A stretch of DNA of 64,000 bases, from assembly GCA_002269645.1 (NCBI GenBank), contig NIVC01000215.1:1-64000 (forward strand), written 5' to 3'. Origin of the DNA: Macrostomum lignano. Its lineage: Eukaryota. The translations under genes were made by a program, and so were the position numbers. Positions 36,201-64,000 of this stretch are shown here, one piece after another. The notes below the pieces were generated by a model. The model was given only the letters and a program-made list of their open reading frames with translations. It was not told the DNA's origin and ran no database searches. Within the stretch, counting starts at the first letter, position 1, and the number at the start of each line of letters is the position of its first letter.

Positions 36201-36470
36201 TTGACATTGTGGCTCTTTAATGTTTGACATGGTGGCTTTTTAATGTTCGACATGGTGGCTCTTTAATGTTCGACATGGTGGCTCTTTTAGGTTTGAAATG
36301 GTGGCTCTTTAATGTTTGACATTGTGGCTCTTTAATGTTTGACATGGTAGCTTTTTAATGTTCGACATGGTGGCTCTTTTAGGTTTGAAATGGTGGCTCT
36401 TTAATGTTTGACATGGTGGCTTTTTTAATGTTCGACATGGTGGCTCTTTAATGTTTGACATTGCGCTTCT
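33300..36470. repeat. ~3.2-kb satellite of 23-bp units
   Basis: GACATGGTGGCTCTTTAATGTT(C/T), degenerate at the left end and more homogeneous at the right. Confidence 0.97.
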
Positions 36471-36509
36471 TTTATGTTTAGCAGTTTTTTGTTTTTAAGG
36501 TATTTTAAT

Positions 36510-41613: not shown

Positions 41614-41834
41614 CCTTACTTGTTGAATGCCTCGCTTTTTTTCCGAGTTTAGAAGAACAGCGCAATGATAGATGAACTAGTTAAGCATTTTTGTCTGCTT
41701 CCTACTACTAATAATCAATATTTATAATTTGAAATATAGTGTTTTGCATCTGATTGCGTTTGTAGCTTTATGAATGCCAACCTATTGGCTGAGATTGAAG
41801 TGTTCTATTATTATATAAGCAAATGTAGTCACAG

Positions 41835-42845
41835 CCTCCTTCCCAAATAGAATCGCCTCCTTCCCAAATAGAATCGCCTCCTTCCTGAATAGAATCGCCT
41901 CATTCCCAAATAGAATCGCCTCCTTCCTGAATAGAATCGCCTCATTCCCAAATAGAATCGCCTCCTTCCTGAATAGAATCGCCTCATTCCCAAATAGAAT
42001 CGCCTCCTTCCTGAATAGAATCGCCTCCTTCCCAAATAGAATCGCCTCCTTCCTGAATAGAATCGCCTCATTCCCAAATAGAATCGCCTCCTTCCTGAAT
42101 AGAATCGCCTCATTCCCAAATAGAATCGCCTCCTTCCTGAATAGAATCGCCTCATTCCCAAATAGAATCGCCTCCTTCCTGAATAGAATCGCCTCATTCC
42201 CAAATAGAATCGCCTCCTTCCTGAATAGAATCGCCTCATTCCCAAATAGAATCGCCTCATTCACAAATAGAATCGCCTCATTCCCAAATAGAATCGCCTC
42301 CTTCCCGAATAGAATCGCCTCATTCCCAAATAGAATCGCCTCCTTCCCAAATAGAATCGCCTCATTCCCAAATAGAATCGCCTCCTTCCCAAATAGAATC
42401 GCCTCCTTCCCAAATAGAATCGCCTCATTCCCGAATAGAATCGCCTCATTCCCAAATAGAATCGCCTCATTCACAAATAGAATCGCCTCATTCACAAATA
42501 GAATCGCCTCATTCACAAATAGAATCGCCTCATTCCTGAATAGAATCGCCTCCTTCCTGAATAGAATCGCCTCCTTCCTGAATAGAATCGCCTCCTTCCT
42601 GAATAGAATCGCCTCCTTCCTGAATAGAATCGCCTCCTTCCTGAATAGAATCGCCTCCTTCCTGAATAGAATCGCCTCCTTCCTGAATAGAATCGCCTCC
42701 TTCCTGAATAGAATCGCCTCCTTCCTGAATAGAATCGCCTCCTTCCTGAATAGAATCGCCTCCTTCCTGAATAGAATCGCCTCCTTCCTGAATAGAATCG
42801 CCTCCTTCCTGAATAGAATCGCCTCCTTCCTGAATAGAATCGCCT
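41835..42845. repeat. 21-bp minisatellite between MRPL11 and ADAM10
   Basis: AATAGAATCGCCTCCTTCCTG and variants, about 48 copies. Confidence 0.97.
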
Positions 42846-42940: not shown

Positions 42941-45900
42941 ATGACTGCCCAGCGCCGCAGCCTCAGCCGCCTGTTGCTAACCGCTGCCCTACTAGCTGGC
43001 GCCGCCGCGTCTTTGTTTAACTGCGTCTCCGGGCGAGCCTACGGCCCCCTAGCAACCACGGAGACGGTCACAGATCACGACCGGCTGCGCTATCCGCCGC
43101 TGGACCTGCCGCCTGGCCGGCTGCACCGGGCCAGGCGAAGTCTCGGCCACTCGGCCGATCCAGTCTGGTTGGAGTTCTCCGCCCACGGCCGGCATTTTGT
43201 GCTCAAATTTTCTCATAACGACGGCTTAGTTGAACCCGGCGCCACCTTTCAATTGGGCGCCTCGGGCAGTCCGGAACCCTTAGATTTTCCCGAAGCTGTT
43301 GTCGGCGAGTTGGCCGACGATCCGGGCAGCCACGCGTTCGGCAGCATCATAGACGGCGTGTTCAGCGGCGCCGTGTACACCTCAGACGGGTCCGGCTGGT
43401 TTGTTGAACCGGCTGGTAGGTACTTTCTCGGCCGGCTCGACTTTCATTCGATTATTTACAATGACTCGCACGTGATGTGGCCGAAACGGCACCGGCGGTG
43501 AGTGCAAGCTTGCGTGGCTTAATCATAAAATATAATAATAATTGTTGGTTGTGGGGCAACCTTGGCAGAACCTTGACAGAACTTCGTCCTGCCTGCTGCT
43601 TCTGAGCGCATTCCTGAGCGCATTCAAGCGCGCCAATACTGCGCTCAGACACGCACTTATGCACGCGCATACAAAACACAGTACACTTTCTTGCACGGGA
43701 AGGGGAGTCAGACTGGTTTACCGCTGAGCTGCTCCGCCACTGGGACAGAGGCTTCTCTTGTTGGACAATTCACACAGAATCCCATCTGGTGGCTCTGCTC
43801 CCAGTGAACGACACTGACCTGTGATCACCTACCCCACTCATTTCACACCCGTGATCACCCATTGCACTCAATTCACACCCGTGATCACCCACCCCACTCA
43901 ACTCACACCCGTGATCACCCACCCCACTCAATTCACACCCGTGATCACGCACCCCGCTCAATTGACACCCGTGATCACCTACCTGACTCAATTCACACCC
44001 ATAATCACCCACCCCACTCAATTCACACCCGTGATCACCTACCTGACTCAATTCACACCCATAATCACCCACCCCACTCAATTCACACCCGTGATCACCT
44101 ACCTTACTCAATTCACACCCGTGATCACGCACCCCGCTCTATTCACCTGTGATCACCCACCCCACTAAATTCACAATCACACCCGTGATCACCCACACCT
44201 CTCAATTCACACCCGTGATCACCCACCCCACTCAATTCACCCGTGATCACCCACCCCACTCAATTCATCCGTGATCACCCACCCCACTCAATTCACCCGT
44301 GATCACCCACCCCACTCATTTCACACCTGTGATCACCCACCTCATCCCCAATTCAGCTCGGTGATCAGGCATCCGCCTGCCGTGCACCCGCCGCTGCCGC
44401 CCCCATTCACCGCTGACAAATCGCTGTTGCCGGACAGTGGCGAGGTCGGCCAACTAGGCGACACGAAGGTGTGCTCGCTCTACTTGCAGTCTGACGCCGC
44501 TCTGTGGGAGGCCACCCTCCGCCTGCCGTCGGTGAACGGCAATCACCAGCGGGCGCGCACGGAGATCAAAGCCCTGTTCCAGCATCACGTTAGCGCGGCG
44601 ACTCATATCTACACGTCTACTAGGTTTATCACTCGAGACAAAAAGTTCGAACAGCGGGGCGTACAGTTTCGGGTTAATCGAATACGGGTTAACACTACGG
44701 CGGATTGCGGCCCGGGCAAGAATAATCCGTTCTGTGCCGAGGGTATCGACGTTACCAGCTTCTTGAATTTGCACGCCTATAGCAACCATTCGGAGCACTG
44801 CTTGGCCTACCTGTTCACTTATCGGGACTTCAGCGGCGGCACGCTGGGCTTGGCCTGGGTTGGCACCAAGGATCAGAATGGCGGCATCTGCGAGAAATAT
44901 CGGGAATACGAGTGAGTGGCTGTTTGTGTCTGCTGTTCTGGGGCTCTGGTTGAGGCTTCAGGTTGAGGCTTCATGTTTAGTTCAGGTTGAGGCTTCATGT
45001 TTAGTTCAGGTTGAGGCTTCATGTTTAGTTCAGGTTGAGGCTTCATGTTTAGTTCAGGTTGAGGCTTCATGTTTAGTTCAGGTTGAGGCTTCATGTTTAG
45101 TTCAGGTTGAGGCTTCATGTTTAGTTCAGGTTGAGGCTTCATGTTTAGTTCAGGTTGAGGCTTCATGTTTAGTTCAGGTTGAGGCTTCATGTTTAGTTCA
45201 GGTTGAGGCTTCATGTTTAGTTCAGGTTGAGGCTTCATGTTTAGTTCAGGTTGAGGCTTCATGTTTAGTTCAGGTTGAGGCTTCATGTTTAGTTCAGGTT
45301 GAGGCTTCATGTTTAGTTCAGGTTGAGGCTTCATGTTTAGTTCAGGTTGAGGCTTCATGTTTAGTTCAGGTTGAGGCTTCATGTTTAGTTCAGGTTGAGG
45401 CTTCATGTTTAGTTCAGGTTGAGGCTTCATGTTTAGTTCAGGTTGAGGCTTCATGTTTAGTTCAGGTTGAGGCTTCATGTTTAGTTCAGGTGTGGCTTTA
45501 GGTTAAGTTTAGGTGTGGCTTCAGGTTAAGTTCAGGTCAGGCTGTAGGTTAGGTTCACGTGTGGCTTCAGCTTAAATTTAGGTGTCTTCAGGTTAAGTTC
45601 GGGTCAGGCCTCAAGTTAAGTTCAGGTGAGGCTTCAGCTTAAATTTAGGTGTCTTCAGGTTAAGTTCAGGTCAGGCCTCAAATTAAGTTCAGGTGAGGCT
45701 TCAGCTTAAATTTAGGTGTCTTCAGGTTAAGTTCAGGTCAGGCCTCAAATTAAGTTCAGGTGAGGCTTCAGCTTAAATTTAGGTGTCTTCAGTCAGGTTA
45801 AGTTCAGGTCAGGCCTCAAGTTTAGTTCAGGTGAGGCTTCAGCTTAAATTTAGGTGTCTTCAGGTTACGTTCGGGTCAGGCCTCAAGTTTAGTTCAGGTG

Positions 45901-48900
45901 AGGCTTCAGCTTAAATTTAGGTGTCTTCAGTCAGGTTAAGTTCAGGTCAGGCCTCAAATTAAGTTCAGGTGAGGCTTCAGCTTAAATTTAGGTGTCTTCA
46001 GTCAGGTTAAGTTCAGGTCAGGCCTCAAGTTTAGTTCAGGTGAGGCTTCAGCTTAAATTTAGGTGTCTTCAGGTTACGTTCGGGTCAGGCCTCAAGTTTA
46101 GTTCAGGTGAGGCTTCAGCTTAAATTTAGGTGTCTTCAGGTTACGTTCGGGTCAGGCCTCAAGTTTAGTTCAGGTGAGGCTTCAGCTTAAATTTAGGTGT
46201 CTTCAGTCAGGTTAAGTTCAGGTCAGGCCTCAAATTAAGTTCAGGTGAGGCTTCAGCTTAAATTTAGGTGTCTTCAGTCAGGTTAAGTTCAGGTCAGGCC
46301 TCAAGTTAAGTTCAGTTGAGGCTTCAGCTTAAATTTAGGTGTCTTCAGGTTAAGTTCAGGTCAGGCCTCAAGTTAAGTTCAGGTGAGGCTTTAGTATAAA
46401 GGGATGTACGGAAGGTTCGCCAAGCTATAATTGTGTATGCATATATTACGAATATGAGATGCGGCTTTACATCGTATATTGTTTTTTACCTGCTTGATTT
46501 TTCCCTAGTTTTATTTTCACTCGTGAATGTCAAAGGTGAAGGCAGCTGTTTACCCAGTTAAGGCCAGTGGGTTTGGCCTAATTCGATCCCCTTCTTGACT
46601 TCTGCAGTTGGTAACTATAGTCAGTCAGTCCGCTAACTAGGGACATCCCAGATCGCAGCTGGTTGACCTTTTTTGTTTCTCGGATGTGCCCGGGTTTCTG
46701 CGTCACACTGGCTGCGTATTCAATCTGTTTTTAGAATTCTAAAATAATCTAGCCTACACCAGTAATGTTATTATTGTGCACCCAGCCTGCGAGTGCAGTT
46801 TCAGCTGTGTCAAATGCAATGCAGCCTGTGTTGTTAGATTTCTTCAGTCATAAAAATTTTCCACGCACAGGAAGGAGGCGTATTAGTTCAAGGAACTGCA
46901 GTCCTTAAACAAGTCCTTAAAACGTCCTTGTAATTTTTCTTTCTACAATAAAAAAATCGCTAGAGAACGCTCCTATTCTTAGTATTGAAAAATGCTCAAA
47001 CTTAACTTTTTTGTTGGAGTTTGTGGAAAAAATCAAGGAATTGGCACCCAGAAAATACATTGATAGTAAAAATTTACTTGTATATTAGATAGAAGGCCGA
47101 GTGAAAAACTTCACGCCATTCTCCAGTGCAAAGTCATAAATTCCAGTGTGCCCCAGTCACAGAGTGGCCTTCCGTTGGTTTTTTATTTCCCAGACTCGCC
47201 CTTCCCTGAGTTTTGTGATCCCAGACTCGCCCTTCCCTGAGTTTTGTGATCCCAGACTCGCCCCTTCCCTGAGTTTTGTGATCCCAGACTCGCCCCTTCC
47301 CTGAGTTTTGTGATCCCAGAATCGCCCCTTCCCTGAGTTTTGTGATCCTAGACTCGCCCCTTCCCTGAGTTTTGTGATCCCAGACTCGCCCCTTCCCTGA
47401 GTTTTGTGATCCCAGACTCGCCCCTTCCCTGAGTTTTGTGATCCCAGACTCGCCCCTTCCCTGGGTTTTGTGATCCCAGACTCGCCCCTTCCCTGAGTTT
47501 TTATGATCCCAGTCTCTTGTCATCTGAGTTGAGTTTTGGAACTAGTGAAATGTCTTTCCTTTCTAAAACCAGACCTTTTGCTTTCATTGCTATTCTGCTC
47601 TTCAAACCAATCCAAGCCATTCCATTCCGCAACCCTCCAACACATCTAGCGATCAGATCCCAGGCCGCAGGTCCTGGAAGTCCTTGAACACGGGCATTGT
47701 GACGCTAATTAACTACGGCCGCCGCATTGTTGAGAAAGTGTCCTACCTGACCTTTGCTCACGAGATGGGCCACAACTTCGGGGCCAATCACGATGACGGC
47801 CTGACCCCGGCTATGCCAGACTGCCAGCCCACCGGGGACCAGGGCAACTACATCATGTTCTCCTCGGCCACCACTGGCGACCTGCCTAATAATAACAGGT
47901 ATAAATGTTTGTTTACTTCACAACCCACAACTTTCACAACCCCCAAAACTTCACAACCCACAAACTTCACAACTCACCAACTTCACAACTCACCAACTTC
48001 ACAACTCACCAACTTAACAACTCACAAACTTCACAACTCACAAACTTCACAACTCACCAACTTCACAACTCGCTAACTTCACAACCCACAACTTTCACAA
48101 CCCCAAAAACTTCACAATCTCAAAACTTCACAACCCACAACTTTCACAACCCCCAAAACTTCACAACCCACAAACTCCACAACCCACAACTTTCACAACC
48201 CCCAAAACTTCACAACCCACAAACTTCACAACTCACCAACTTCACAACTCACCAACTTCACAACTCACCAACTTCACAACTCACAAACTTCACAACTCAC
48301 CAACTTCACAACTCGCTAACTTCACAACCCACAACTTTCACAACCCCCAAACTTCACAACCCACAACTTTCACAACCCCCAAAACTTCACAACCCACAAC
48401 TTTCACAACCCCCAAAACTTCACAATCTCAAAACTTCACAACCCACAAACTTCACAACCCAAAACCTTTCAAACACTCAAACTTCACTTTGCCAAATTTT
48501 CCAAATAAAAATCATTAGGCAAAGGCAGGATGCCACCATGTTTTCCGTTTTCTCTGATAAAAATCAGACGCGTGCATAAAAAATTTCAAGTAAAATTCTT
48601 ATTTTCCTACTGAATTAGTAGCCTGTAGCAGAATTGAATTATCGACACAAAAACTTCTTCTCGGCCAGGTTCAGTCCGTGCTCGCGCGACAGCATGGCCT
48701 CCCTGCTAGATCAGGTGCTCAACGCGCGCAGCGGCAAGGCCAATTGTCTCAGACGGAGCACAGAAGCGGCCGCCTTCTGCGGCAACAGCCTGCTAGAGCC
48801 TGGCGAACAGTGCGACTGCGGCTACGCCGACGAGTGCACCGACGCCTGCTGCCATCCGCGCGGCGGCCCCTCCGGCCAGCCGGCCTGCCGGGTGCGGCCG

Positions 48901-50903
48901 CACGCCCGCTGCTCTCCGTCTGGCAATCTGTGCTGCACAGCCGGCTGCGACTTCACCCCGGCTGGCACTGTCTGCCAGGCCGAGACCGACTGCGCCCTGC
49001 CCGCGGTGTGCACCGGATTCGCCAGCTCCTGTCAGGAGGCCCGGCACAAGCCCGACAACTCTACTTGCCGCGCCGGCACTCGGCTCTGCCGCCAGGGCAG
49101 CTGCGGGCCGTCCGTCTGCGCCCTGATTGGCTGGCTGGATTGTCAGAGTCCGCCCTGCTACCTGGGCTGCCGGCCCAGCAATACAAGCCGGTGCATCAGC
49201 ACTAAAGAGGTGGCCGGACTGCGCGATTATAATTCGCCCGTTTATAAACTGCTGCAGAGGGTTAATGCTACCGCGTTTGGCTTGAAGCTGCAGGTAATCT
49301 ATTGCTCACTTATGCGTTCTCACTCACCAGTTCTTAGATGAGATCCCCGACTATCCTCATTTGAGATCCCAGACTATCCTCATTTGAGATCCCAGACTAT
49401 CCTCATTTGAGATCCCAGACTATCCTTATTTGAGATCCCAGACTATCCTTATTTGAGATCCCAGACTATCCTTATTTGAGCTCCCAGTCTTTATTGAGAT
49501 CCCAGACTATCCTTATTTGAGATCCCAGACTATCCTTATTTGAGCTCCCAGTCTTTATTGAGATCCCAGACTATCCTCATTTGAGATCCCAGTCTATCTA
49601 CTGAGATCCCAGACTATCCTTATTTGAGATCCCAGACTATCCTTATTTGAGCTCCCAGTCTTTACTGAGATCCCAGACTATCCTCATTTGAGATCCCAGT
49701 CTATCTACTGAGATCCCAGACTATCAACTGAAATCCGAAACTATCCTCATTTGAGATTCCAGACTATCCTCATTTGAGATCCCAGACTATCCTCATTTGA
49801 GTTCCCAGACTGTCAACTGAAATCCCAAACTATCCTCATTTGAGATCCCAAACTTTCCTCATTTTAGATCCCAGACTATCAACTGAAATCCGAAACTATC
49901 CTCATTTGAGATTCCAGACTATCCTCATTTGAGTTCCCAGACTGTCAACTGAAATCCCAAACTATCCTTATTTGAGATCCCAAACTTTCCTCATTTTAGA
50001 TCCCAGACTATCAACTGAAATCCGAAACTATCCTCATTTGAGATTCCAGACTATCCTCATTTGAGATTCCAGACTATCCTCATTTGAGATTCCAGACTAT
50101 CCTCATTTGAGATTCCAGACTACCCTCATTTGAGATTCAGACTATCCTCATTTGAGATCCCAGTCTATCTATTGAGATCCCAGACTATCCTCATTTGAGA
50201 TCCCAGACTATCCTCATTTGAGTTCCCAGACTATCCTTATTTGAGATCCCAGACTATCCTCATTTGAGATCCCAGACTATCCTCATTTGAGTTCCCAGAC
50301 TGTCAACTGAAATCCCAAACTATCCTCATTTGAGATCCCAAACTTTCCTCATTTTAGATCCCAGACTGTCAACTGAAATCCCAAACAATCCTCATTTGAG
50401 ATCCCAGACTGCCAACTGAAATCCCAAACTATCTACTGATTTTCTATTGGGATTTCGAGCCCCATCTGATTCCTGTTCCCTTCTCCCCCTATTTGCAGGT
50501 TGGCTCCCCGTGCGAGAACTACAAAGGCTATTGCAACGCGGACCATGAGTGCCGCCTCATAGACACTAAGGGCCCGTTGGGCCGCCTTCAAGATCTGCTA
50601 TTCAGTCCGGAGTCCTTGGAGCAGGTCCGCAATTGGATAGTTGCCAACTGGTACTTTGTTATCATTATCTGTCTGGCTGTGCTTATCGCTCTGGGCGCTT
50701 CAGTCCGACTGTGCTCCGTTAGGCGCTCAGCCGCCAATGCCGCCAGGGAGGCCGCCGCGGCTGTGGCCGCCGTCAACGCAGTCTCCGCCAACGGATCCTC
50801 GAACGTCGGCGGGTTGGCCGCCTCGCTGCCGCCACCTCCGCCAGTTTACTGTGTCAGGGCCGACCGTTCGATGGATTCGAGTGAACTGGCCTACTGCCGG
50901 TGA
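42941..50903 (+). CDS. ADAM10: ADAM10/kuzbanian-like metalloprotease-disintegrin; exons 42941-43497, 44357-44911, 47650-47898, 48669-49293, 50499-50903 (~796 aa)
   Basis: Signal peptide, prodomain ending in furin-like RHRR, YLFTYRDFSGGTLGLAWVG, zinc motif HEMGHNFGANHD, Met-turn YIMF, disintegrin CGNSLLEPGEQCDCG, and GPLGRLQDLLFSPE followed by a TM helix. Intron phases (2,2,2,0) are mutually consistent. Confidence 0.93.
43820..44350. repeat. 30-bp minisatellite, ADAM10 intron 1
   Basis: GTGATCACCCACCCCACTCAATTCACACCC; runs up to the acceptor at 44356. Confidence 0.93.
44950..46390. repeat. 24-bp perfect array followed by a derived ~62-66-bp array, ADAM10 intron 2
   Basis: TTCAGGTTGAGGCTTCATGTTTAG x~22 (44950-45490), then a longer unit built from TTCAGGT/GAGGCTTCA pieces. 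Confidence 0.95.
47170..47515. repeat. 32-bp minisatellite, ADAM10 intron 2 (distal)
   Basis: CCCAGACTCGCCCCTTCCCTGAGTTTTGTGAT, about 10 copies. Confidence 0.93.
47915..48480. repeat. ~16-bp CA-rich minisatellite, ADAM10 intron 3
   Basis: CACAACTCACCAACTT and variants. Confidence 0.92.
49335..50430. repeat. 23-bp minisatellite, ADAM10 intron 4
   Basis: GAGATCCCAGACTATCCTCATTT and variants. Confidence 0.93.
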
Positions 50904-50929
50904 GGCTTGGGTTCTTAGCTTATCTGTGG

Positions 50930-51520
50930 TGCGAGTTCTCCGAATCTTCCCTCTCTTGAGTCTTTGTGCTTCCCGAACTCCCCCCCCCTATCGTCTTTGT
51001 CCTCCCAGTATCTTCTCCCGTTGAATCTTTGTGCTCCCCAAATCTTCTCCCATTGAGATTTTGTCTCTAATTGAGTTTTTTCTCCCCAAATCTTCCCTCA
51101 TTGAGTCTTTGTTCTCCCTAAATCTTCTCCCCGAGTCTTCCCTCATTGAGTCTTTGTTCTCCCCAAATCTTCTCCCCGAGTCTTCCCTCATTGAGTCTTT
51201 GTTCTCCCCGATTATTCTCCCATTGAGTCTTTGTTCTCCCCGAATCTTCTCCCATTGAGCCTTTGTGCTTCCCAAACTCCCCCCTATCGAGTCTTTATCC
51301 TCCCAGAATCTTCTCCCGTTGAATCTTTGTGCCCCCCAAATCTTCTCCCATTGAGAGTTTGTCCCTAATTGAGTTTTTTCTCCCCGAATCTTCCCTCATT
51401 GAGTTTTGTTCTCCCCGAATCTTCCCTCATTGAGTCTGTTCTCCCCGAATATTCTCCCATTGAGTCTTTGTTCTCCCCGAATCTTCTCCCATTGAGTCTT
51501 TGTTCTCCCCGAATCTTCCA
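50930..51520. repeat. Degenerate pyrimidine-rich minisatellite after ADAM10 exon 5
   Basis: TTCTCCCCGAATCTTCTCCCATTGAGTCTTTG-type units. Confidence 0.88.
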
Positions 51521-51571
51521 TTCCCCTGGGTTCCTGAGCTCCCAGACTAATTATACCATAATAAAACGCAG

Positions 51572-51719
51572 TACCTGCGCCTTCGCATTCGCAGCGAGCT
51601 GCATCTGGCTTACGCCCAGCCATCTGCCGGCCACGGCAAGGGCAGGCGAATCGGCCACCGGCGGGCCATGGAGACGCAGGCAGCCAAGTACACCACGGCT
51701 CACGCATATCAATGATTAG
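51572..51719 (+). CDS. Possible extra terminal (cytoplasmic-tail) exon of the ADAM10-like gene
   Basis: The stop at 50901 overlaps a good donor (cg|gtgagg). A GC-rich block follows the acceptor aaacgcag| after an intervening minisatellite, and phase 2 gives an open frame to the TAG at 51717-51719. No homology support. Confidence 0.3.
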
Positions 51720-52529
51720 CAAGCTAATTGCAATTTGCTGTGGCATCCTTCCTCCTATTTTCCTAGATAATCGTGGACTCACAATATTCCCTGTACACCT
51801 TGCCGGATGCCGCCGGGATCCCAGGAGTTGACCATAATTAAGTTACTAAGTGCCGCTCCGTGACGAATGGAAAACATAATCTTTCAATTGGAATTCAATT
51901 TCTGCATGAGCCTTTCCTACTGAGTATCTAATTATCGGCGTAAATCCTTTGCAATTACATTTTCTGTCGGCCTGTAAAATTTATCATTGCTGATGGTTTT
52001 CTTACTGTTTTATCTAATTTAGTAATTTATAACTACTGTTAGTAGGTGTACGGATTTTAGCGGGCTTTGTTTGACTAAACAAAAAACTATATGATAATTT
52101 TTGCCTTACAAAACTGGAGCAACAAAAAACTGTTTAACAGTAACAATGAGATCCAGCTCCTCAAGTCTCAGGCCGTATTGTTGAATGTGTTTCAATTTGC
52201 TATTTCCGCGTTTGTTTTCTATTCTATTATTATCTGTTTACGAAATAATGAATTTCAATCCTGCTTCATCTTGTACACAGTTGCCGGCGAGAGCTATATG
52301 CGCACAGCTACTGGCTAAGAAGTAACAAAAATATTAGCGATTTATATCTGTTCATTGTTTTTATTTGAAAGCTTAACAAAAGTTTATTCGATAGCCAATT
52401 TAAATGCCATTTAGAATATAATGCGCTTTTGTGCAATTCTTTCAAACAATATGTCCATTTCTCAATTACCCCATTTTCTGTGTTTTCTGCCTGCTCTATT
52501 AAAAATAAACGTTCGTTTAACACTTATGC

Positions 52530-52790
52530 TGAGCTTTGGCCATAGACATATGCGTATTGGCTGTGGTTGGGCGATAGACATTTCGTTGTGGTTGGGCCAT
52601 AGACGTGTGTTGGCTGTTGTTGGGCCATAGACATTTGTTTATTGGCTGTGGTTGGGCGATAGATGTTTGTGTATTGGCTGTGGTTGAGCCATAGACGTTT
52701 GTGTGTTGGCTGTGGTTGGGCCATAGACATTTGTTTTGACTGTTGTTAGACCATAGACATTTGTGTGTTGGCTGTGTTGGCCATAAATAT
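52530..52790. repeat. Short degenerate tandem repeat containing GGCCATAGAC
   Basis: TTGGCTGTGGTTGGGCCATAGAC...-type units. Confidence 0.8.
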
Positions 52791-53389
52791 TTTCTTTCTT
52801 ATGATTCAAGTTCTAGGCATCTCACTTTGAGACCTGTATTTACTTCTTTATAATTAAACCAAATTCTGTTAAGTTTAATCATTGTATTCACGAGTGCAAT
52901 TTCTAGCGTGTTATGACTTATGTTAGCAGCAAATACTTATATTGGTAATCTACCTTTTTATAAATATGTAATCTTTATTTCACTTTCTTTCTATTTTTAC
53001 GATTTTTGCGAACTGGCGCAAGTTTTACACGATCAAAATATATTGTTCACTGCGTGCTACACACAACTTCTTTCTGCATTGACTTTTTGTATATAATACT
53101 ACTGAAAATCATATAAGCAATAAAATACTGCTTTCTTATATTTAGTGCGCGATTTCACACACGTAGGCATGTCTTTAACTTGTCCGAACATCTATAATAT
53201 ATTACATTTTCTTTTACTGCATATCTCTTATATCAGTTTATTTATTTCTCAATTAAATTATACAATTTGACTGAACTCATGTTATTTATTTATGTTTACA
53301 TGCCAGAAATGGACTGCGAGGTCTTTGTCGCCTTCCTTTTGTTCCAGATTTGAACCTGTAGACTAGGGATCAGTTGGGGGATCTGCAGA

Positions 53390-54730
53390 TTGGGTATCTG
53401 TAGGCTGGAGACCAGTTTGGGGATCATTTTGTTAATCTATAGATTGGGATCAGTTTGAGGATGTTTAGATTGGGGATCAGTTTGGGGATGTTTAGATTGG
53501 GATCAGTTTGAGGATGTTTAGATTGGGGATCAGTTTGAGGATGTTTAGATTGGGGATCAGTTCGGGGATGTTTAGATTAGGGATCAGTTCGGGGATGTTT
53601 AGATTGGGGATCAGTTTGGGGATGTTTAGATTGGGGATCAGTTTGAGGATGTTTAGATTGGGGATCAGTTTGGGGATGTTTAGATTGGGGATCAGTTTGA
53701 GGATGTTTGGATTGGGGATCAGTTCGGGGATGTTTAGATTGGGGATCAGTTTGAGGATGTTTAGATTGGGGATCAGTTTGAGGATGTGTACATGGGGGAT
53801 CAGTTTAGGGATGTTTAGATTGGGGATCAGTTTGGGGATGTTTAGATTGGGGATCAGTTTGAGGATGTTTAGATTGGGGATCAGTTTGAGGATGTTTAGA
53901 TTGGGGATCAGTTTGGGGATGTTTAGATTGGGGATCAGTTTGAGGATGTTTGGATTGGGGATCAGTTCGGGGATGTTTAGATTGGGGATCAGTTTGAGGA
54001 TGTTTAGATTGGGGATCAGTTTGAGGATGTGTACATGGGGGATCAGTTTAGGGATGTTTAGATTGGGGATCAGTTTGGGGATGTTTAGATTGGGGATCAG
54101 TTTGAGGATGTTTAGATTGGGGATCAGTTTGAGGATGTTTAGATTGGGGATCAGTTTGAGGATGTGTACATGGGGGATCAGTTTGGGGATGTTTAGATTG
54201 GGGATCAGTTTGGGGATGTTTAGATTGGGGATCAGTTTGAGGATGTTTAGATTGGGGATCAGTTTGAGGATGTTTAGATTAGGGATCAGTTTGAGGATGT
54301 TTAGATTGGGGATCAGTTTGGAGATGTTTAGATTGGGGATCAGTTTGAGGATGTTTAGATTGGGGATCAGTTTGGGGATGTGTAGATTGGGGATCAGTTT
54401 GGGGATGTTTAGATTGGGGATCAGTTTGGGGATGTGTACATGGGGGATCAGTTTGGGGATGTTTAGATTGGGGATCAGTTTGGGGATGTGTACATGGGGG
54501 ATCAGTTTGGGGATGTTTAGATTGGGGATCAGTTTGGGGATGTTTAGATTGGGGATCAGTTTGAGGATGTTTAGATTAGGGATCAGTTCGGGGATGTTTA
54601 GATTAGGGATCAGTTCGGGGATGTTTAGATTGGGATCAGTTAAATGATGTATGTTTAGATTAGGGATCAGTTTGGGGATGTGTAGATTGGGGATCAGTTT
54701 TGGGATGTGTAGATTGGGGATTAGTTTGGG
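53390..54730. repeat. 27-bp minisatellite
   Basis: GGGGATGTTTAGATTGGGGATCAGTTT, about 48 copies. Confidence 0.95.
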
Positions 54731-56071
54731 GATCTGTAGAATATTGATCTACAGATCTACAATTTGAAGATTTTTTTACAAATATAGTAACTCGTTTTCT
54801 TAATCTTTAATACGCATAAGAAATCATCGTTTTAATGGGCTCTACAGGTGATATCGACCGTTGCAGAAATTTCGGCATCATTTCTCTTACAGGTGTATTT
54901 ATTGTAACAATAGTAATTAAAGCAATAGGTCTCCATTCTTCTGGATCTTATTTGTCCGTCCTGAACTGGCCTTGCCGCACTTAAAGCTGCTCCTGAAATG
55001 ATTGGGTTGGTGCAGTCTGGTTAATACAGTTTTTAATAGCGTGCATGATCATGCTAATACCCTTGGCAGCCCCCTTTGTGATGTCTGTCTATGGTCCAAA
55101 GGGCTTTTGATTCAGTGCGAAGTCAGCTGTTGGGCATGAAACCCGATGAGGCTGTCCGCGGTTGTGTAATCCTCGCTTTATTGCTATTGCTAACTGCAGC
55201 AGCACGTGTATTTTATGCTGAGAGTGTACTGTCGCTTTTGACGATCTAAAAAACGGGACGCCATAGACATTCAAGCCAGGCCACAGATCACACCCTAGTC
55301 ATGGACTTAAGCCTTTTCGCGCCGGAGCTTAGAAATGCAAAAGCTCCGTTCCTGCGGACATGGTCAGCAGGGCTGGCCATAGACTATAGCTAGAATCTTA
55401 ATGCGCCCCTGTGCAAAGCCTTTCCAGCCGAGAAGGGAGCATTTTATACTTGGCTTGGAAAATCTAGGGTCGAAAAAAGCAGTTCAAAGTGCATTTCACT
55501 TAATGCTCTCTGAATAGATAACGCAGTGTGTAGACTCGATATCTAGCAATAGACACTACAGTTCACTTTAAAATCTGCAAACAGGCCTTTTTGAAAGAGA
55601 AAGCACTGCACCTCCTTAATACGAGTAGTGCATCATTTTATTGAAAAGTAAATCAGCTACAACCATGGATATTTTGCATACATCGGATTCTGAGACTGAT
55701 GATGTCATCACAGAGAATGCTGAAACCGAGTCGCTGCATTCCATTGCAGATAAGTAGGACTTTTTTCACCCATTTTTCGTATGATCAGCGCTGCTGACCA
55801 TGCTTGGCAGGAACGGCTAATGTGCAGCTCATAACTTTTCTTTTACCATAGACTCCAAAAAATTACCAGCAGTAAAGGCTGTTGGCCCATGGTCAGCTCT
55901 GCTGAACATCCGGCAGCTTAAAGTTAAGCAGTTAAGCAAAGTCTACTGAGGGAGGCTTGGCCATAGACTATAACTTTAGACATTCAATATGGGAATCGGA
56001 CTGAGATTTTATAGCTCTCTGTCCCTCTCCCTCCTGTTTGCTCGTCTTTGGCCTGAAAGCGACCCCATTGA

Positions 56072-56340
56072 ATGGCGCCACCAATTCCTGTAGCAGATCG
56101 CCAGCGGCTGACTGATGCGATTGAACAAGAGTCAGCCATCGCAGGAGCTGCAAGAATCTTGCAAATCAAAAGAACAACCGCATTCCAAATCGCTGCCAAC
56201 TTTCGACTCGATTGCAGAGTGTGGAATCCTTTCCTCGCGGTGGTCGGAAAATGGATTTTGCAAGAGCCGATCAGGAAATGAGAGAATTATTGGTTGAGAA
56301 ACTCGATGAAAATCCTTTCCTGACGCTCAAGGAGTTCTGA
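56072..56340 (+). mobile_element. Tc1/IS630-like transposase N-terminal (HTH) fragment
   Basis: AGAARILQIKRTTAFQI, then after a frameshift PRGGRK...LVEKLDENPFLTLKE, resembling the paired-like HTH plus GRPR-like linker of Tc1-type transposases. Lies between 38-bp direct repeats (55250, 56490). Confidence 0.5.
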
Positions 56341-56710
56341 GTTACTTTTGTTTTGCCTCCGGTAACGGACACTTTGTTCACTTTTAAATATTCCAGTAGC
56401 ACCGAGATATAAAAATACCATGGTTCTTCCAAACAGTTTCGAGGTCGCAAATCGCTAATTTGACGATCTAAATGGGAATTTGGACAATCAAAACGGGACG
56501 CCATAGACATTCAAGCCAGGCCACAGACTCGGGTTGCTTGGGAATGCATAACCATAGAATGTGGAATGGACAATCAAAACGGGAATTCACCCAATTTAAC
56601 AACTCTTTGTATGTCTCGTGTTAAAGTGCTTGTGTTTTCCTTAAATTGGTTTGTACGCTCGTATACAGAGCCAAAACCAGTTCTTACCTTTCCGTTTTTT
56701 TGTTAATTTT

Positions 56711-57441
56711 TCAGCAACTAGGCGCAGATTTGACGTACTGCTTGCAATAAAACGGTTTGTTTGCCGTTGCCTCATTGTTCAACACTTCGTCGTGGCCCAA
56801 ATTCATGACGGGAAAGGTCAGATTGAATGGCTTGCACTCGATAAGCCTGCAGGATGTGCGGACAGTGTTAATGCGTAGTATGTACATGTATAGCACAGTA
56901 TTTATGTACATGTACAACCTGTACGCAGACACATGCTCACACAGGGTGTACAGTAGCCCCGACTTTCTCATCCTTAGGTGTTCACATGATCTGAGCACTT
57001 TCTGAGTCTTGGGCATTGTGTCTCACTATCTTGAATCGCACTATAGAGGCCCCCCTAATCTAATATCTGTGCACGCGAGCACCATAATGCATAAAATGCA
57101 TGGAATCGAACTCAGGCACTTAAGTTAATAAAATTTGCTCACCACGGCTTCTTAGAGACGCACTCAATCTCGTCCACAAGCACCTGAGGCGATCGGTTAG
57201 GTTTCCATGTGAACTTCATCCTGGCGATGCACTCGCTGACCGACTTGGCCTGACGTATTGAGCGCATGACGCTTCTGGCAATCCGAAAGTCCTCGGCGAC
57301 AGTCCATGCAGACCGCCAGGGCTGGGCAATGCAGTTGGCCGAGGCCTGGCCGGGGCACGTGCAGAACTGCAGCAAGATGGCGACCGTCAGCATCACCGGG
57401 AGGCATGCGGAACCCTTGCTGCTGCTGCTGCTGCTTGCCAT
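56711..57441 (-). CDS. Small secreted six-cysteine protein (144 aa), divergent IL-17/cystine-knot-like; exons 57441-57143 and 56846-56711
   Basis: MASSSSSSKGSACLPVMLTVAILLQFCTCPGQASA is signal-peptide-like. The phase-2 donor tg|gtgagc and acceptor ctgcag|g join in frame (299+136 = 435 nt). TWKPNRSPQVLVDEIEC resembles IL-17F TWDPNRYPSEVVQAQC (recalled sequence). Confidence 0.65.
56925..57120 (-). mobile_element. Second SINE family, copy in the intron of the secreted-protein gene
   Basis: Reverse complement reads GAGTTCGATTCC...GTGCACAGATATT...GAGAAAGTCGGGGCTACTGTACACCCTGTGTGAGC, colinear with 63363-63525. Confidence 0.6.
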
Positions 57442-57702
57442 GCTGAGAGGGCCTGATTTAAACTGCTGGATTAAATCAAATGGGGAGAAGCAATTCTCAA
57501 TCCCACTTACTGTTACTGTTTTATATGAGCTGTTATCAGCTGCATTGGCTGAGTACAAGCAAGCTTGAACAGATATTTATAAAGTTAAACATCCTGGATG
57601 TCTTATCAATTTACTTTAATAGTTTATTGGTTAAGCAAGCTATTTCCTTGTAATAACTATCTTAAGTCGCTCATCTAACGCGTTTGACGTCACGTGTCAT
57701 GC

Positions 57703-58090
57703 GGCATCGTTACCTCCAGGAGAAAATCCGCAGTGAGGAATGCCCTTTCTGCCTCTCCGGTGTCGAGAATGCGGAGCACTTCATCTGTGAATGCCCCGTT
57801 TTTACTCAGGAGAGGCTCACCTACCTCGGCCCAAACCCGGACCTCTCCGACGTTTTCAGGCCCGAGAATCTCCGCCAGCTTGTCCGCTACCTAAGGGCTA
57901 CCGGGCGAGCGACAATCCACCTCCTGGACTCTCCGGAGGGGGACCGCGCTGCGGACGCCGGCGCCACCGGAACTCCCTGCGCGACACCGCAGCACCAGCT
58001 GCCCGTGGTCGCCAGGGATTAGCGAAATGGGCGGCAACGCCTCCTCGCTGTTTCCGGACGCACGGAGCCCCCTGCAGCTAAGTCAAGTAA
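57703..58090 (+). mobile_element. 5'-truncated non-LTR retrotransposon 3' end (CCHC zinc-knuckle C-terminus)
   Basis: [19 protein letters not shown]...[10 protein letters not shown] motif; 14-bp TSD GTCACGTGTCATGC (57689-57702, 58091-58104); short AAGTC-like tail. Confidence 0.85.
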
Positions 58091-58849
58091 GTCACGTGTC
58101 ATGCAGTGTCCAAAACATGCATGTATACAATTTGTCTCGCAGTGTGTTTTTAACAATTTCCAGTGCATTTAGCATGGTAAAATTAGATCCAGAGCGGGCA
58201 TAAATTTAGAATATTTCCAAATAAGTCGGCAGAATATATAATTCAGGCAACAAATTCAAGACTGATTTTCGTTTGCCGATATCGATTAATCAAATCGCGT
58301 GTAGCCACTGAAGTGATTTATAGACAATTTGCTATACATGAGTGTAAAGCATCATATGTTTCCTTTTACATGTACGTAAGTGTAAAAAAAGATAGCTGAC
58401 ACTGCACACTCGTGTTCTTTAAACGGATTTCGCAAAGATATTTGCTTGAAGTGCCTTCTACGATTGGCATAGATAAAACTCGGGCAAAAATCGGTATTGA
58501 AAAATACTTGTAAACATGAGAGAACTGCAAGACATTCCTGAAAAACAACTTGGAATAAATGTGAATCGAGCTCGGACCAATTGAAGGGGGCAGAGTAATC
58601 GCAGTGTGCACGAAAATTTGCCGAGGCTGCGACAACACACAACAATTAAGCACACCGCCGCCGGGGAACAGAGTACAGTTCACAAGAGGCCAGGCGGTGT
58701 CAGATCTGTTTCTCAGTACGCGAGCTCTCTGAAGGCGGCAACAGAGTGCGACTTGCCGATCACCCCAGCATCCATCCATGCAGCAGCAGGCAATCCATCA
58801 AGTAGCGGCGCATATGGCCGTAGCCCCGGCGCCAGGGGCCCTGCATCGT

Positions 58850-59460
58850 GAGCAGCAGGACGTCCTGCACCGGTTCGAGGGCAGTGTATTATAAGCTTCC
58901 CCGCGCTCGGATGGTGTGTCCCGCCAGTTGAAGTCTTAACGCCTGCGGAGGGTCTCGCTATATAGGTGGTCGCAGTCCTGAGCTCTGGTAGAGGGCTGCG
59001 TTTGGAGACTGCGTCCGGGTAGCTATAAAGTTGAAGGCGGCTCGCAGCAGGGCCGAGTGTCGCTTCTCCAGAGCCTCTGGGTCAGCGTCCACGTCTCTCA
59101 GCGTTTGTAAGGATCTCTCAGGACGGTTGTAACCGCGCGTCTCTCAGGACGGCTTCGACTGCCGCCTGAAACAGCCCACCCTTTCAAGCGGTCTGCTGGC
59201 AGCGTGGCGTTCTGCAGTATAACCCGGATAGAGCAAAAGGCCACCCAGGCCAGGCCCCTGCATCGCGCCAAGTCCTCCTGGACATGGCGCGAGACCTCCC
59301 CCCCCCCGAGGTACGTGAAGCGCGTGCAGCGAGGTAGAATTTGTTGCATGACCGTAGATCGACACCGCGGGCAGTTCCTAAGGTACAGCTAGTCATCACC
59401 TCTGTCTTCTGGATGTTCGCCGCTAGCCCGACCGATGCTGCAGATGCCACCATGGGCTGT
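58850..59460 (-). mobile_element. Degenerate RTE-like LINE reverse-transcriptase C-terminal fragment
   Basis: Frameshifted pieces read GLAANIQKTEVM, FTYLGG, ETWTLTQR and RLQLAGHTIR, matching the RTE order GL.IN..KT / F.YLGS / ETW / RL.W.GH..R. Confidence 0.7.
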
Positions 59461-61681
59461 CAAGCAATGCGCTGGGCTCTAGCTCGCCGCAAATCGAGGC
59501 ACTTTCAGCGCCATGGATCGTCAGCAGCGTATCCCAGGAGTGACAGCGCTGCGCTTTTCCGGATGGCGGCTGCTTGAATTTCTCAAAGGACAGCAGGAAG
59601 CCGTCCTCATCTGATGGATTATCTCCTTCACGGCTGTCAGCAGCTGTCCCTGACTGTAGGCCTCTGCGAGAGCAGCCCGGCTTCATTTAGCCTCATACAG
59701 TACAGCGATCTCTTTCCTGCCACACGCACCGGGCCTCGAGTCTGATTCGAGCGCTGAACTTCCGGCTCAGTCTCCTGCAGACCGGCTGACCTTTCGTCGA
59801 CGCGCCTTGCGCGGTCATAGTCCATGGGCACACCCTCTGCGGTTTCGCTCTCGGCGTCCGAAGAATGCGGCAATCGAGCAGCGCTCCGGTGGCCGGTGGC
59901 TAATTCTGGTCATGCCTCGCCGCAGTTTGAGGCCGATAGCCGCTTGATGCGATCAAGTAGGTCCAGCACTTATACGCACACAGGCCGTATAAATAAGATT
60001 GAATCGTAAAACAAGATGGCTCACAAATATAAGATGGCTCACAAATCTAAGATGGCTCACAAAAGATGCACAGTATAGAACATCTTGTCGTTTTTCCTGT
60101 ATCTTGAGTGAGAAGCATTCGAAAGTGAATAATAGTTTATCATCTCTTCTTATACGGACGATTTTTGCTTTTACTGCTGCAATATTTCAAGACACTAGTT
60201 TAAATGCGATCACCATGAATTTGATTTTTGTTTTTCAACTTTCAACTTTTCTAAGAAGCCTTCGATTTAGGCCTATCGATTTCGATTTCGATTTTTACGT
60301 ATGGCACCAACACCACTTATAATATGATTGATATTCGATGTAAATGAAACTGAAGCCGACTGTAACTGGAGACTGGAGTTAGTTTTAAAAAAATTATAAG
60401 TGAAATTGAAAATCAGTTTCGACGTATATTCTTTTAGGGGTGGTTCAATTCCATGGTACAATGAGTTTGTGGTATGCGAGGCAGGCAGCGAGTGCGGTCT
60501 GGGTCTGCGATGCACTTTTTGCCATGTCTGCTAGATTCATTGATAGGATTATTTAACTTTTAGTCAGAATTTTCAGACAGTAGCAAGTATTTTATTAATT
60601 CCTTGTCTTATGTTTGCTGTGCATGTATACAGCTCATGCAAAAGCATTGCAATAAAGCTACAAATTGTAGGCCCTATTCAATTTTTGTCTCTAGACAAAA
60701 GAATTAATTAACAGGTGGAAGTATCAGCTTCATTTTCAAAGTGTCTTTCACTCTATTTTATTTTTATCTGCTGTTATTAATATTGATATATCATAAAAGT
60801 CAAAAGATATAATATTCTTTATTCATCATTTAATTTGTCAAAAGTTAAAAATTATTGTTTTAAAATTGCAAAGAATGTAATATCATAAAACTCAAAAGCA
60901 GTTTAACTTTAGTTATCTAAAATAATACTTTTATAAATAGGACTTTTATTAGTAATATAATGGAAAGTATATTAGCTAAAGGGCAATCTTAATCCTCTAG
61001 GGCCCTAGTTTGTTTTATAATATTATTTTAAAGTTTGATTTGGTCTTACAACATAATCATAGTGCCACAGTAGAAAATGATGTTTGTTGCCAAAAGAGAT
61101 GGCATAGGAAATCGTATCAGAAAACACTTTAGCTCTATCTATTCCTCTATAAATCACTTAAGTAAAATTTTTAACAGCAATGATGTTTACTTATAAATCT
61201 CTTTCTTTAAAATAACAAATAAATGCAACAAAATTAAGCTTTTACAATAAAAAGATAGCAAGAAGCTCAAATTCCCCCTAACTAGAAGGTACCCCCCAGG
61301 TAATAGGCATTCTTGACCCTAAATAGCAAGTATCTCTAGATGGCAAAAGTCCATAGATAACAAGTATCCCCAAAGAACAAGCAACCCGAGACAAAAAGTA
61401 TCCTCCACTCTAGATAGCAAGCATCCTTAAATGGCAAGCATCTCCTAATTATTAAAGCTCTGTCTTATCTTTCATTAATTTATTTTAGGTAACAAAGTTT
61501 TAATAATTATTTATAACAAGTTAAATAGATTTATATTTTTTTCAAGGCTCCTACCTTGACAGGTAAGATATATAAATTATTTGTCTTTCTAGGCAAAAAC
61601 AAATATTTTTACTTCCACTTTTTCAGACTTTTTTATTTTATTTTTTTACTAAATTTTCATTCATTTTCTTTTAGCTTCAGA

Positions 61682-62847
61682 ATGTCCAACAATCCAAATG
61701 CATGTCCTCAGATGAAAGAAAATCAAGATTTGGCATGCTTTCATGTTACAAAGTTATCATGGAAAGGAAAGTAAGTAAAAATGATATATTTTGCTTTTTA
61801 TAATGTAATACTATTGGCCTAATGTATATATTGTTTTATAATATGAAAATGTTTATTTGATACCAAAGTAGCTAAAGTACTAAAGTATAATTTTTTTATA
61901 AATATATAGTTTCTTTTTAGAAAGGCATGTATCTGATCTTTTAAAATTAAAAAAATTGTCTTTCATATAAGAAAATGCTAGAACATCAGCATTTAAGAGC
62001 TGTCATGATGATCATTACCAATAGGTTATCTGCTTAGAGTTATAGTGGGTTACAAAGGATAGAGATCTATTATAACATCTTATGCTATTTAATAACACCT
62101 CCATTTTAATATTTAAGTGCAAATATCACTTGGAATTCTAAGAATTATAATAAAAGATTTGTTCTTGTTCTGCAGGCACTCATTTTAGTGCCGAAGGCAC
62201 TCATTTTAGCGCCCTGAAACAAATTCTTGCTTTCCACAATGTGTCACGTGGGGTTGGAGGACAAAGCATTGTCATGTCCTCCCCATAGCTTTTACTTGGG
62301 GGGGGGGGCATGTCCCCCAGTCCCCCCCCCCGCACCCAGCGGCGACGTTCCGGTGCTCTGCCCCCTTCAGTTGAAGTGCTTTTTGCAATATGTTGATCCG
62401 CAACTGCCTGTCCCTCAGGTACAAGCGCATATTCAGCATAGGCACGCAGGGCATCACTACGTACAATCCCCAGACTCTGGAAATCACCAACCAATGGCTC
62501 TACAGCGATTTCTTCAACATCCTGCCCAATCCGAAGGGCGGCCCTCAGGAGCTCATTATTCAGATGAAGAAAGTCGGCGGCAACAAGAAGGATCAGATGA
62601 AGTTCGCCTCAGACCATCGGGCCGACATCCTGACTGAGGCGCTGCGATTTCAGCACCAGTTCGCTGAGACGCCAAGAACGCCGGCCAGGTTCAACACATT
62701 CAAGCAGCACTGGTCAGACACGCGAAAGAATGTCGTGCTGGCCGTCAACTCTGCCGGCCTGTGCCAGTTCGATCCTGTCAGCAACTCGCTGCTGTGCACC
62801 TACGATTATAAGGACATCGAATGCCTGCTGCTGGTCAGTGTAGTAGT

Positions 62848-62892
<45 letters not shown>

Positions 62893-62897
62893 ATAGC

Positions 62898-62937
<40 letters not shown>

Positions 62938-63270
62938 GCAGCAGTAGTAGTAGTAGTAGCAGTAGTAGTAGCAGCAGTATTAGTAGCAGCAGTAGTAGTA
63001 GTACTTGTGTAGTAGTAGCAGATGTGATAATACTCGGCAGAATAAATAATAATTTGTGTTTTTGCAATTATCAGTAGTAATCAAACCAGAAGCACAAGAA
63101 ACTAATATTACAATTCAGAAGAAGATTTTGCATGTGCTGAAAAGCCTGCACTGGCTGTATAGTTTAAAATGGATCCCGATAACAGCTCTCGCCTAATCCA
63201 ATCCCTGTCTTTCAAGATTCCCGACCTACCCGGCGGAATTTCCGTCGTTTGCGGCGGCTTCGGACGCAAT
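61682..63270 (+). CDS. DNAJC13: DNAJC13/RME-8, first three coding exons (61682-61770, 62419-62833, 63217-63270); continues beyond the window
   Basis: MKENQDLACFHVTKLSWKGK|YKRIFSIGTQGITTYNPQTLEITNQW ... LTEALRF ... KQHWSDTRK ... CTYDYKDIE ... GGFGR matches the RME-8 N-terminus. GT-AG sites are in phase, and the window ends on an acceptor-like tttgcag. Confidence 0.93.
62840..63020. repeat. (AGT)n/(AGC)n microsatellite, RME-8 intron 2
   Basis: Begins immediately after the donor at 62834. Confidence 0.95.
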
Positions 63271-63299
63271 GTGAGTTTTTATGCGCTTTTCTACATAAA

Positions 63300-63545
63300 A
63301 TAGTCAAGTTGGTTCGCGGGGGGCGGGCAAATCAGCTCAGCGTAAAACGCGCCATGATCCCTGGTTCGATTCCCACATTTATTTGGGGCTTGTGTGCACG
63401 GATATTGGGCTGGGGAGGGGGTTTGTCGTGCGGTTCACAGCCATGAGGGCCAGCCCCCAAGGCACAGAGTGCACATGCCTGACGATTAGAAAGTCAGGGC
63501 CGCTGTACACCCCGTGTGAGCGGTGTATGAGTGCATGCCCGCGTC
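63300..63545 (+). mobile_element. Second tRNA-headed SINE family, copy in RME-8 intron
   Basis: Box A/B-like head (TAGTCAAGTTGG ... GGTTCGATTCC). Its body CCCCCAAGGCAC...AGAAAGTCAGGGCCGCTGTACACC is shared with 22955-23175 and the reverse complement of 56925-57120. Confidence 0.65.
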
Positions 63546-63557
63546 CTTATTTAATTT

Positions 63558-63868
63558 CTAGGGTTGCAGCCTAGTGGTTAGAGAGTCGGACTCCCGACTG
63601 GAAGGTCGGGGGTTCGATTCTCGACCCACTCGGAACAGTTTGTGTCCTTGAGCAAGACACTTAACTCTGCATTGCTTCAGTTCACCCAGCTGTAAAATGA
63701 GTGCCAGCATCAGCTGGGGTAATTGAGGCTGTGTGTGGCGATCCCCCAGTCCTTGGACTGAACAGCCGTACGCAGCCTTCAGATGCGCCGCGCCATAGCT
63801 GCGGCTGAGCTGTCGGTTGCACATCTCGGGCCATTAGGGCAGGTGAAATCAATTATTATTATTATTAT
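63558..63868 (+). mobile_element. tRNA-derived CORE-like SINE, copy 2 (RME-8 intron)
   Basis: TAGTGGTTAGAG (box A) and GGTTCGATTC (box B). TGTGTCCTTGAGCAAGACACTTAAC...CTGTAAAATGAG aligns with the MIR CORE consensus as recalled. (ATT)n tail. Confidence 0.8.
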
Positions 63869-64000
63869 GCCTGCGTACAGCATTTCTCATAATATAGTGG
63901 CTGTACCATTACGCTCTGTCCTATCGTCGGGGACGCACACTCCGTTGAACACCAGGCACTTTCGCACTGTAACTTCGTCTATAAAACCCCCAATTTGCAG

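Follow-up and report, generated by a model that had tools for sequence, protein, structure and literature searches.

The window analyzed here, a 64,000-nucleotide stretch of Macrostomum lignano DNA (contig NIVC01000215.1), contains a two-exon gene that lies antisense in the ~10-kb gap between an ADAM10-like gene and a homologue of RME-8/DNAJC13. The neighboring genes and the principal repeat arrays of the window are as follows:

~46711-51715, plus strand: ADAM10-like metalloprotease gene with Reprolysin, Disintegrin and ADAM10 Cys-rich domains, its last exons interleaved with minisatellites
~61682-64000, running past the window end, plus strand: RME-8/DNAJC13 homologue (RME-8_N, E 1e-48 for 62390-62851)
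11188-15348 (28-nt unit, 145 copies) and 33310-36479 (23-nt unit, 138 copies): minisatellite arrays
53417-54740, 44957-46391, 41834-42845, 49339-50410, 2986-3869 and 1698-2527: further minisatellite arrays, among others

The window is unusually dense in such long minisatellite arrays, with units of 16-48 nt in up to 145 copies, several of which translate into long spurious ORFs that draw weak protein matches. Next to the minisatellites at 1698-2527, whose units measure 17-20 nt, a plus-strand ORF (2519-2938) resembles a WD40-repeat exon, which we take to be TBL1-like, and a (GTA)n microsatellite at 62840-63018 lies inside the RME-8/DNAJC13 homologue. Just downstream of the 3' end of the two-exon gene, an exact 38-bp direct repeat occurs at 55250-55287 and 56490-56527, 1.2 kb apart, and may represent the ends of an inserted element. 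The preliminary description had set the gene among transposable-element relics, and a weak zf-RVT tail nearby agrees with this: the plus-strand ORF 57684-58022, ~160 bp upstream of the TATA box of the gene and on the opposite strand, encodes the motif C-x2-C...H-x3-C, matches Pfam zf-RVT weakly (E 0.033, short of the family cut-off) and, judging from its sequence, resembles the 3' tail region of ORF2 from a non-LTR retrotransposon. The two-exon gene comprises the following elements:

57544..57548, minus strand: CCAAT-box-like element upstream of the gene, a putative promoter element
57519..57525, minus strand: TATAAAA box 78 nt upstream of the ATG, likewise a putative element
57441, minus strand: ATG start codon in the context AGCATGG (A-3/G+4), graded as a strong start context
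57143..57441, minus strand: coding exon 1, 299 nt, spanning Met1 through the second base of codon Trp100 and encoding the signal peptide, Cys37, Cys71, the PNRSP block and Cys94
57337..57441, minus strand: part coding for the predicted signal peptide, residues 1-33 or 1-35, from the n/h/c layout and the -3/-1 rule
57187..57201, minus strand: codons of P81-N82-R83-S84-P85, resembling IL-17 motif 1 D-P-N-R-[IYF]-P, in register with Cys71 and containing the N82-R83-S84 sequon
56847..57142, minus strand: sole intron, 296 nt, GT..AG, phase 2, splitting the W100 codon as TG|G
56804..56836, minus strand: codons of C104-KPFNLTFPV-M114, resembling the invertebrate IL-17 motif 3 C-x-P-[IV]-x3-[IV]-x-V-L and containing an N-L-T sequon
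56711..56846, minus strand: coding exon 2, 136 nt including the TGA, from the last base of Trp100 to Cys144, encoding Cys104, Cys134 and Cys144
56713-56711, minus strand: TGA stop codon at the end of exon 2

Direct translation of the spliced minus-strand CDS (435 nt) yields a peptide of 144 aa, identical to the one quoted in the preliminary description; the gene is real, and the model that had been drawn by eye is correct. The intron opens at the donor G|GTGAGC at 57142 and closes with the acceptor tcctgcag|G ending at 56847, and the junction 57143/56846 is reproduced in both public copies of the protein, PAA87812.1 and A0A1I8HYF8. The former, annotated in GenBank as 'hypothetical protein BOX15_Mlig015405g1, partial', comprises 154 aa, i.e., the 144-aa protein preceded by a 10-residue in-frame 5' leader, and was called on NIVC01000215.1 (Mlig_3_7) over the 761-bp span 57471..56711 with an identical splice junction; this contig of assembly GCA_002269645.1 matches positions 46711-64000 of the window with 100% identity. 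The Mlig_3_7 GenBank annotation derives from RNA-seq transcript assemblies (StringTie, TACO and de novo assembly) processed with TransDecoder, with transcripts overlapping repeats dropped beforehand (PMC5730564), and the 57143/56846 junction therefore has transcript support. In addition, the CDS start at 57471 in this transcript-derived annotation would fit a start site ~30 nt downstream of the TATAAAA box. The gene is thus already known publicly, as a hypothetical protein with the exact junction and with a paralogue in UniProt, and the expectation that annotation would easily miss it was mistaken.

The paralogue, A0A1I8HYF8 (M. lignano, 'Secreted protein'), is also 144 aa long, shares 97% identity with the protein described here and falls in the same 90% cluster as PAA87812.1. 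The two proteins differ by four substitutions, S7I, A35D, A65T and S143N, which leave the mature cysteines and both motif blocks untouched, and the junction peptide KKPW|LIEC is conserved together with all the cysteines. The intron had also been described as occupied by a SINE, a call that rests on the B-box-like sequence GAGTTCGATTCC; no SINE or tRNA-like element was detected in 56847..57142 by ARAGORN or Rfam, and self-BLAST disclosed no second copy of the intron in the 64-kb window, so that this part of the description is not confirmed.

The encoded protein displays the signal-peptide-like N-terminus and the six mature cysteines that had been noted before. As read from the translation, the N-terminus comprises (i) a polar n-region, MASSSSSSKGSA, (ii) a hydrophobic core, CLPVMLTVAILLQFCTC, and (iii) the segment PGQASA, with small residues at positions -3 and -1 of two adjacent candidate cleavage sites, GQA|SA (after residue 33) and ASA|NC (after residue 35). 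The n/h/c regions, the small residues at -3/-1 and the lack of any further hydrophobic span correspond, on this rule-based reading, to a classical signal peptide, and both the peptide and its cleavage sites are predicted in this way. Residue 35, which would occupy position -1 of ASA|NC, is Ala here and Asp in the paralogue A0A1I8HYF8, and cleavage after GQA33 is therefore favored in both copies. The predicted mature part of 109-111 aa contains six cysteines (C37, C71, C94, C104, C134 and C144) and two N-glycosylation sequons, N82-R-S and N108-L-T. According to the mechanism that we propose, the 144-aa product would enter the ER via its cleavable N-terminal signal peptide, and the three cysteines within the signal peptide would leave together with it; the mature protein could then form three disulfides from its six cysteines, would present its two sequons for N-glycosylation and be exported, and would function extracellularly, either as a soluble ligand or as an effector.

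The search for relatives highlights the narrow distribution of this protein. A phmmer search over 1.84 billion representative proteins returned M. lignano copies only, besides one spurious tandem-repeat ORF, in agreement with the lineage restriction anticipated in the preliminary description. The spurious match, a 553-aa unnamed ENA ORF (E 6e-6), is a chance resemblance: the frame crosses a 59-aa tandem repeat that finishes in (HT)n, and a 42-aa match of ~40% to the signal-peptide region, occurring seven times over, inflates the score. A further UniProt entry, A0A1I8IC87 (1280 aa, 'Inositol-pentakisphosphate 2-kinase'), which might be taken for a domain fusion, is a chimeric gene model from an older M. 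lignano assembly that embeds residues 41-143 amid low-complexity, frame-wandering sequence, and its kinase name is not trustworthy for the embedded segment. Within the 64-kb window, tblastn and self-comparison disclosed no paralogue elsewhere; a tblastn match at 1940-2038 (E 0.22) is a 17-20-nt minisatellite translated in frame. The family therefore comprises two or three near-identical copies in the recently duplicated M. lignano genome and is taxonomically restricted, a so-called 'orphan'. Absence from other Macrostomum species weighs little, because the collection lacks the RNA-seq-derived copy even from M. lignano, and the 'orphan' status may reflect Macrostomum orthologues missing from the searched databases.

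The preliminary description had likened the protein to a highly divergent IL-17 or cystine-knot cytokine. Three motifs characterize the IL-17 family, (i) motif 1, D-P-N-R-[IYF]-P, (ii) motif 2, YExxxEx[VI][APT]V[GA]CTC[VA], and (iii) motif 3, LN[SC]VP[IV]YQxILVLR[RK] (PMC4517768). An IL-17 HMM was built from 55 aligned and trimmed domains out of the 61 sequences of the S1 dataset of that study, which spans nematodes, an annelid, molluscs, Daphnia, sea urchin, Ciona, amphioxus and vertebrates, and recovers all 61. This published set was chosen because a search with human IL-17A/F gave only mammalian sequences among the best 120 matches; a PDB profile search for IL-17 relatives likewise gave IL-17A, IL-17F and IL-25 only.

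Both the HMM and hhalign pick the same ordered correspondence between the candidate and the family, aligning PNRSP with D-P-N-R-x-P, I-E-C with E-A-x-C, and CKPFNLTFPVM with C-x-P-[IV]-x3-[IV]-x-V-L, a pattern exemplified by Lottia CQPIVYRIPVL. At motif 1, FTWKPNRSPQVLVDEIEC shares the residues P, N, R, P and L, which keep register with Cys71, whereas the aromatic Y and the E-A are missing and the closing Cys is shifted by one residue; Cys71 itself occupies the position of knot Cys1, where the vertebrate S-P-W has Ser, with N82, R83 and P85 at +11, +12 and +14, exactly the IL-17 distances. The match between TWDPNRYP and TWKPNRSP that had been spotted by eye is real and in register. At motif 3, CKPFNLTFPVM fits the invertebrate pattern C-x-P-hydrophobic-x3-hydrophobic-P-V-L/M, and the LVLRR strand that should follow is replaced by NLGHDE. 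Motif 2 has no counterpart, the C-terminus ...KQYVKSAPSC containing neither V-G-C nor C-x-C, and this region is reached only by the global mode of hhalign (P 0.05).

In the global alignment, the knot positions give the pattern 1-1-0-1-1-0, which is shared by 9 of the 55 known IL-17 domains; they come from amphioxus, nematodes (among them C. elegans ILC-17.1), Lottia (among them two genes) and oysters (again two genes). The pattern corresponds to the T1C type, in which disulfide 3/6 is lost, described for IL-17 by Chen et al. (PMC11087794). The earlier suggestion that the terminal CxC has been lost thus matches a documented type. The cysteine spacing is mixed: C1-C2 (22, known 21-22) and C4-C5 (39, known 25-43) lie within the known ranges, whereas C2-C4 (9, known 11-24) and the number of residues after Cys5 (zero, known at least 4) lie outside them, and once the spacing is relaxed to admit the candidate it is fitted by ~4% of random six-Cys placements. 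The intron maps, in the IL-17 alignment, to the Cys94-Cys104 loop.

With all HMMER filters off and in one comparison, the mature protein scores 6.3 bits against the IL-17 HMM (nominal P 7.6e-4). Genuine IL-17s reach at least 32 bits against models built without their own clade, even when all protostomes are left out, whereas the candidate obtains 5.0-6.8 bits on those models; recognized IL-17s score five- to ten-fold above it. Composition-preserving shuffles reach the HMM score of the candidate in 56 of 5000 cases, and in 32 of 5000 when the cysteines are held fixed. The hhalign comparison gives a probability of 8.5% in local mode (P 0.004, equalled by 3 of 600 shuffles) and of 0.6% in global mode. 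Furthermore, hmmscan against Pfam-A returned zero families at E ≤ 10 for the 144-aa protein, with IL17, Spaetzle and Noggin among the families covered, and a sequence search of the PDB gave no match at E ≤ 10. The similarity represents the 0.5-1% tail for a single pre-specified comparison, and the 5% tail in global mode, and is too weak for membership: tested by the profile evidence that defines the family, the protein shows neither the curated Pfam match nor the member-like HMM score. Requiring the HMM score and the relaxed cysteine spacing jointly leaves 1 of 5000 shuffles, a figure that comes from a post hoc criterion and disregards the un-IL-17-like C-terminal third.

Structure prediction adds little to this picture. 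The AlphaFold2 models, made from the single sequence without an alignment, have pLDDT values of 35.9 (precursor) and 44.4 (mature part); from residue 71 onward the latter consists entirely of beta structure, but it is unreliable and of low confidence. Foldseek searches of the PDB with these models returned generic FN3-like sandwiches at best (E ~1), with no IL-17 or cystine knot among the matches, and are uninformative, because both AlphaFold models are of low confidence. The fold comparison that had been put forward as a check on the cystine knot was carried out with models whose confidence is too low to use, and it returned no such fold.

Taken together, these data make it rather probable that the product of BOX15_Mlig015405g1 is a taxonomically restricted, signal-peptide-bearing, disulfide-bonded extracellular protein to which no family can be assigned from sequence or models. 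It is unlikely, by comparison, that the protein belongs to the IL-17 superfamily as a genuine, extremely derived member of the invertebrate T1C type, with knot disulfides 1/4 and 2/5 kept and 3/6 lost. Such a member would have Cys71 as Cys1 (the C of C-P-W), Cys94 as Cys2, Cys104-x-Pro as Cys4 and Cys144 as Cys5, with Cys37 and Cys134 as an extra pair and PNRSP as the D-P-N-R-x-P turn between strands 1 and 2, and it would dimerize and signal through a flatworm IL-17 receptor. The concordant alignments, the exact distances from Cys71, the two spacings in range and the coherent paired loss of Cys3 and Cys6 all argue for this assignment, as do the shuffle counts and the strand-turn-strand CIARMKFT / WKPNRSP / QVLVDEIEC that the single-sequence AlphaFold model draws, at low confidence, as in IL-17 strands 1-2. 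Flatworm proteins, moreover, are notoriously divergent. Many IL-17s are too divergent for standard detection, and members below that level are documented (Chen et al. 2024, PMC11087794). Against it, besides the profile scores and the Foldseek result, stand the absence of the near-invariant P-W after Cys1, of the E-A before Cys2 and of the VLRR and V-x-V-G-C-T-C strands, together with a C2-C4 loop that is too short and a protein that stops at its putative Cys5. No flatworm IL-17 or IL-17R is described in the literature searched, and the text of the IL-17 surveys consulted does not mention flatworms. The hypothesis was, in addition, drawn from the same sequence on which it is judged, and a P of ~0.01 fails correction for the dozens of cysteine-rich ligand families that could have been proposed instead. 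The likeness to IL-17 is stronger in motif and cysteine register than the preliminary description had seen, but the profile and Foldseek comparisons do not support the family assignment itself. The more general lesson is that an in-register match of motif and cysteines may seem convincing and yet sit only in the 1% tail of composition-matched noise.

It is far less probable still that the locus encodes no functional protein, in which case the ORF would have arisen by chance in TE-rich, transcribed intergenic DNA or would belong to a gene, very young or in decay, whose product lacks a selected function. The setting among minisatellites and a LINE tail, the lack of homologues outside the species and the low AlphaFold confidence would suit this possibility; the gene ID BOX15_Mlig015405g1 is also absent from the supplements of the M. 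lignano expression papers, which hold no expression record for it, and from the literature search. On the other hand, the architecture is coherent, comprising a TATA box, a strong start context, a signal peptide and a canonical GT..AG intron, the second copy, 3% diverged, keeps frame, length and all cysteines, and the gene is included in the transcript-based, repeat-filtered 'coregenes' annotation, all of which argues against this possibility.

As it stands, the result is an ordinary one: M. lignano, a transgenic and RNAi-tractable regeneration model, has many secreted proteins restricted to its lineage, and this is one of them. Should the doubtful IL-17 assignment nevertheless hold, the protein would be the first recognized flatworm ligand of the IL-17 superfamily, with a minimal T1C-type knot, a shortened 2-4 loop and an end at Cys5, and would illustrate the extent to which IL-17 ligands of the fast-evolving Platyhelminthes can drift out of reach of profile detection. 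A real link of this kind would be of modest importance, and would provide a useful test case for 'hidden' cystine-knot cytokines.

Comparison with known systems highlights both the resemblance and its limits. The T1C invertebrate IL-17 ligands (PF06083), including C. elegans F25D1.3/ILC-17.1, Lottia gigantea 169526 and 159302, and Crassostrea gigas EKC33705, are secreted proteins of 110-190 aa and share with the candidate (i) a P-N-R-x-P turn 10-14 residues after a Cys, with the next Cys ~22 residues after the first, (ii) a C-x-P...P-V-[LM] strand, and (iii) a single C-terminal Cys instead of C-x-C, in the pattern 110110. Unlike them, the candidate has no C-P-W, E-A-x-C, VLRR or V-G-C and no significant profile score, its C2-C4 loop is two residues shorter than any known, nothing follows its last Cys, and its C-terminal third, instead of forming a long beta-hairpin, is hydrophilic. 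The vertebrate IL-17A and IL-17F (PDB codes 4HR9 and 1JPY) belong to type T2, in which Ser occupies knot positions 1 and 4 and the C-x4-C...C-x-C pairs are present; the cysteine set of the candidate is the opposite of this T2 set, and neither the PDB sequence search (E ≤ 10) nor Foldseek links the two.

In the wider group of cystine-knot ligands, such as NGF, Spaetzle, Trunk/PTTH, Noggin, TGF-beta, PDGF and the glycoprotein hormones, the candidate finds proteins that are likewise small and secreted, with six cysteines and a predicted beta structure; in contrast to the canonical cystine-knot growth factors, it contains no C-x-G-x-C or C-x-C anywhere in its 144 aa and has no Pfam match at E ≤ 10. 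Finally, the restricted secreted proteins of Macrostomum, comprising fast-evolving reproduction-related and gland transcripts (PMC7336406, PMC5977470), resemble the product of BOX15_Mlig015405g1 in being short, in bearing a signal peptide, in occurring as duplicated copies in a hidden-polyploid genome and in having no detectable homologues outside the genus, and the protein may, purely by analogy, be placed in this class of reproduction and gland transcripts.
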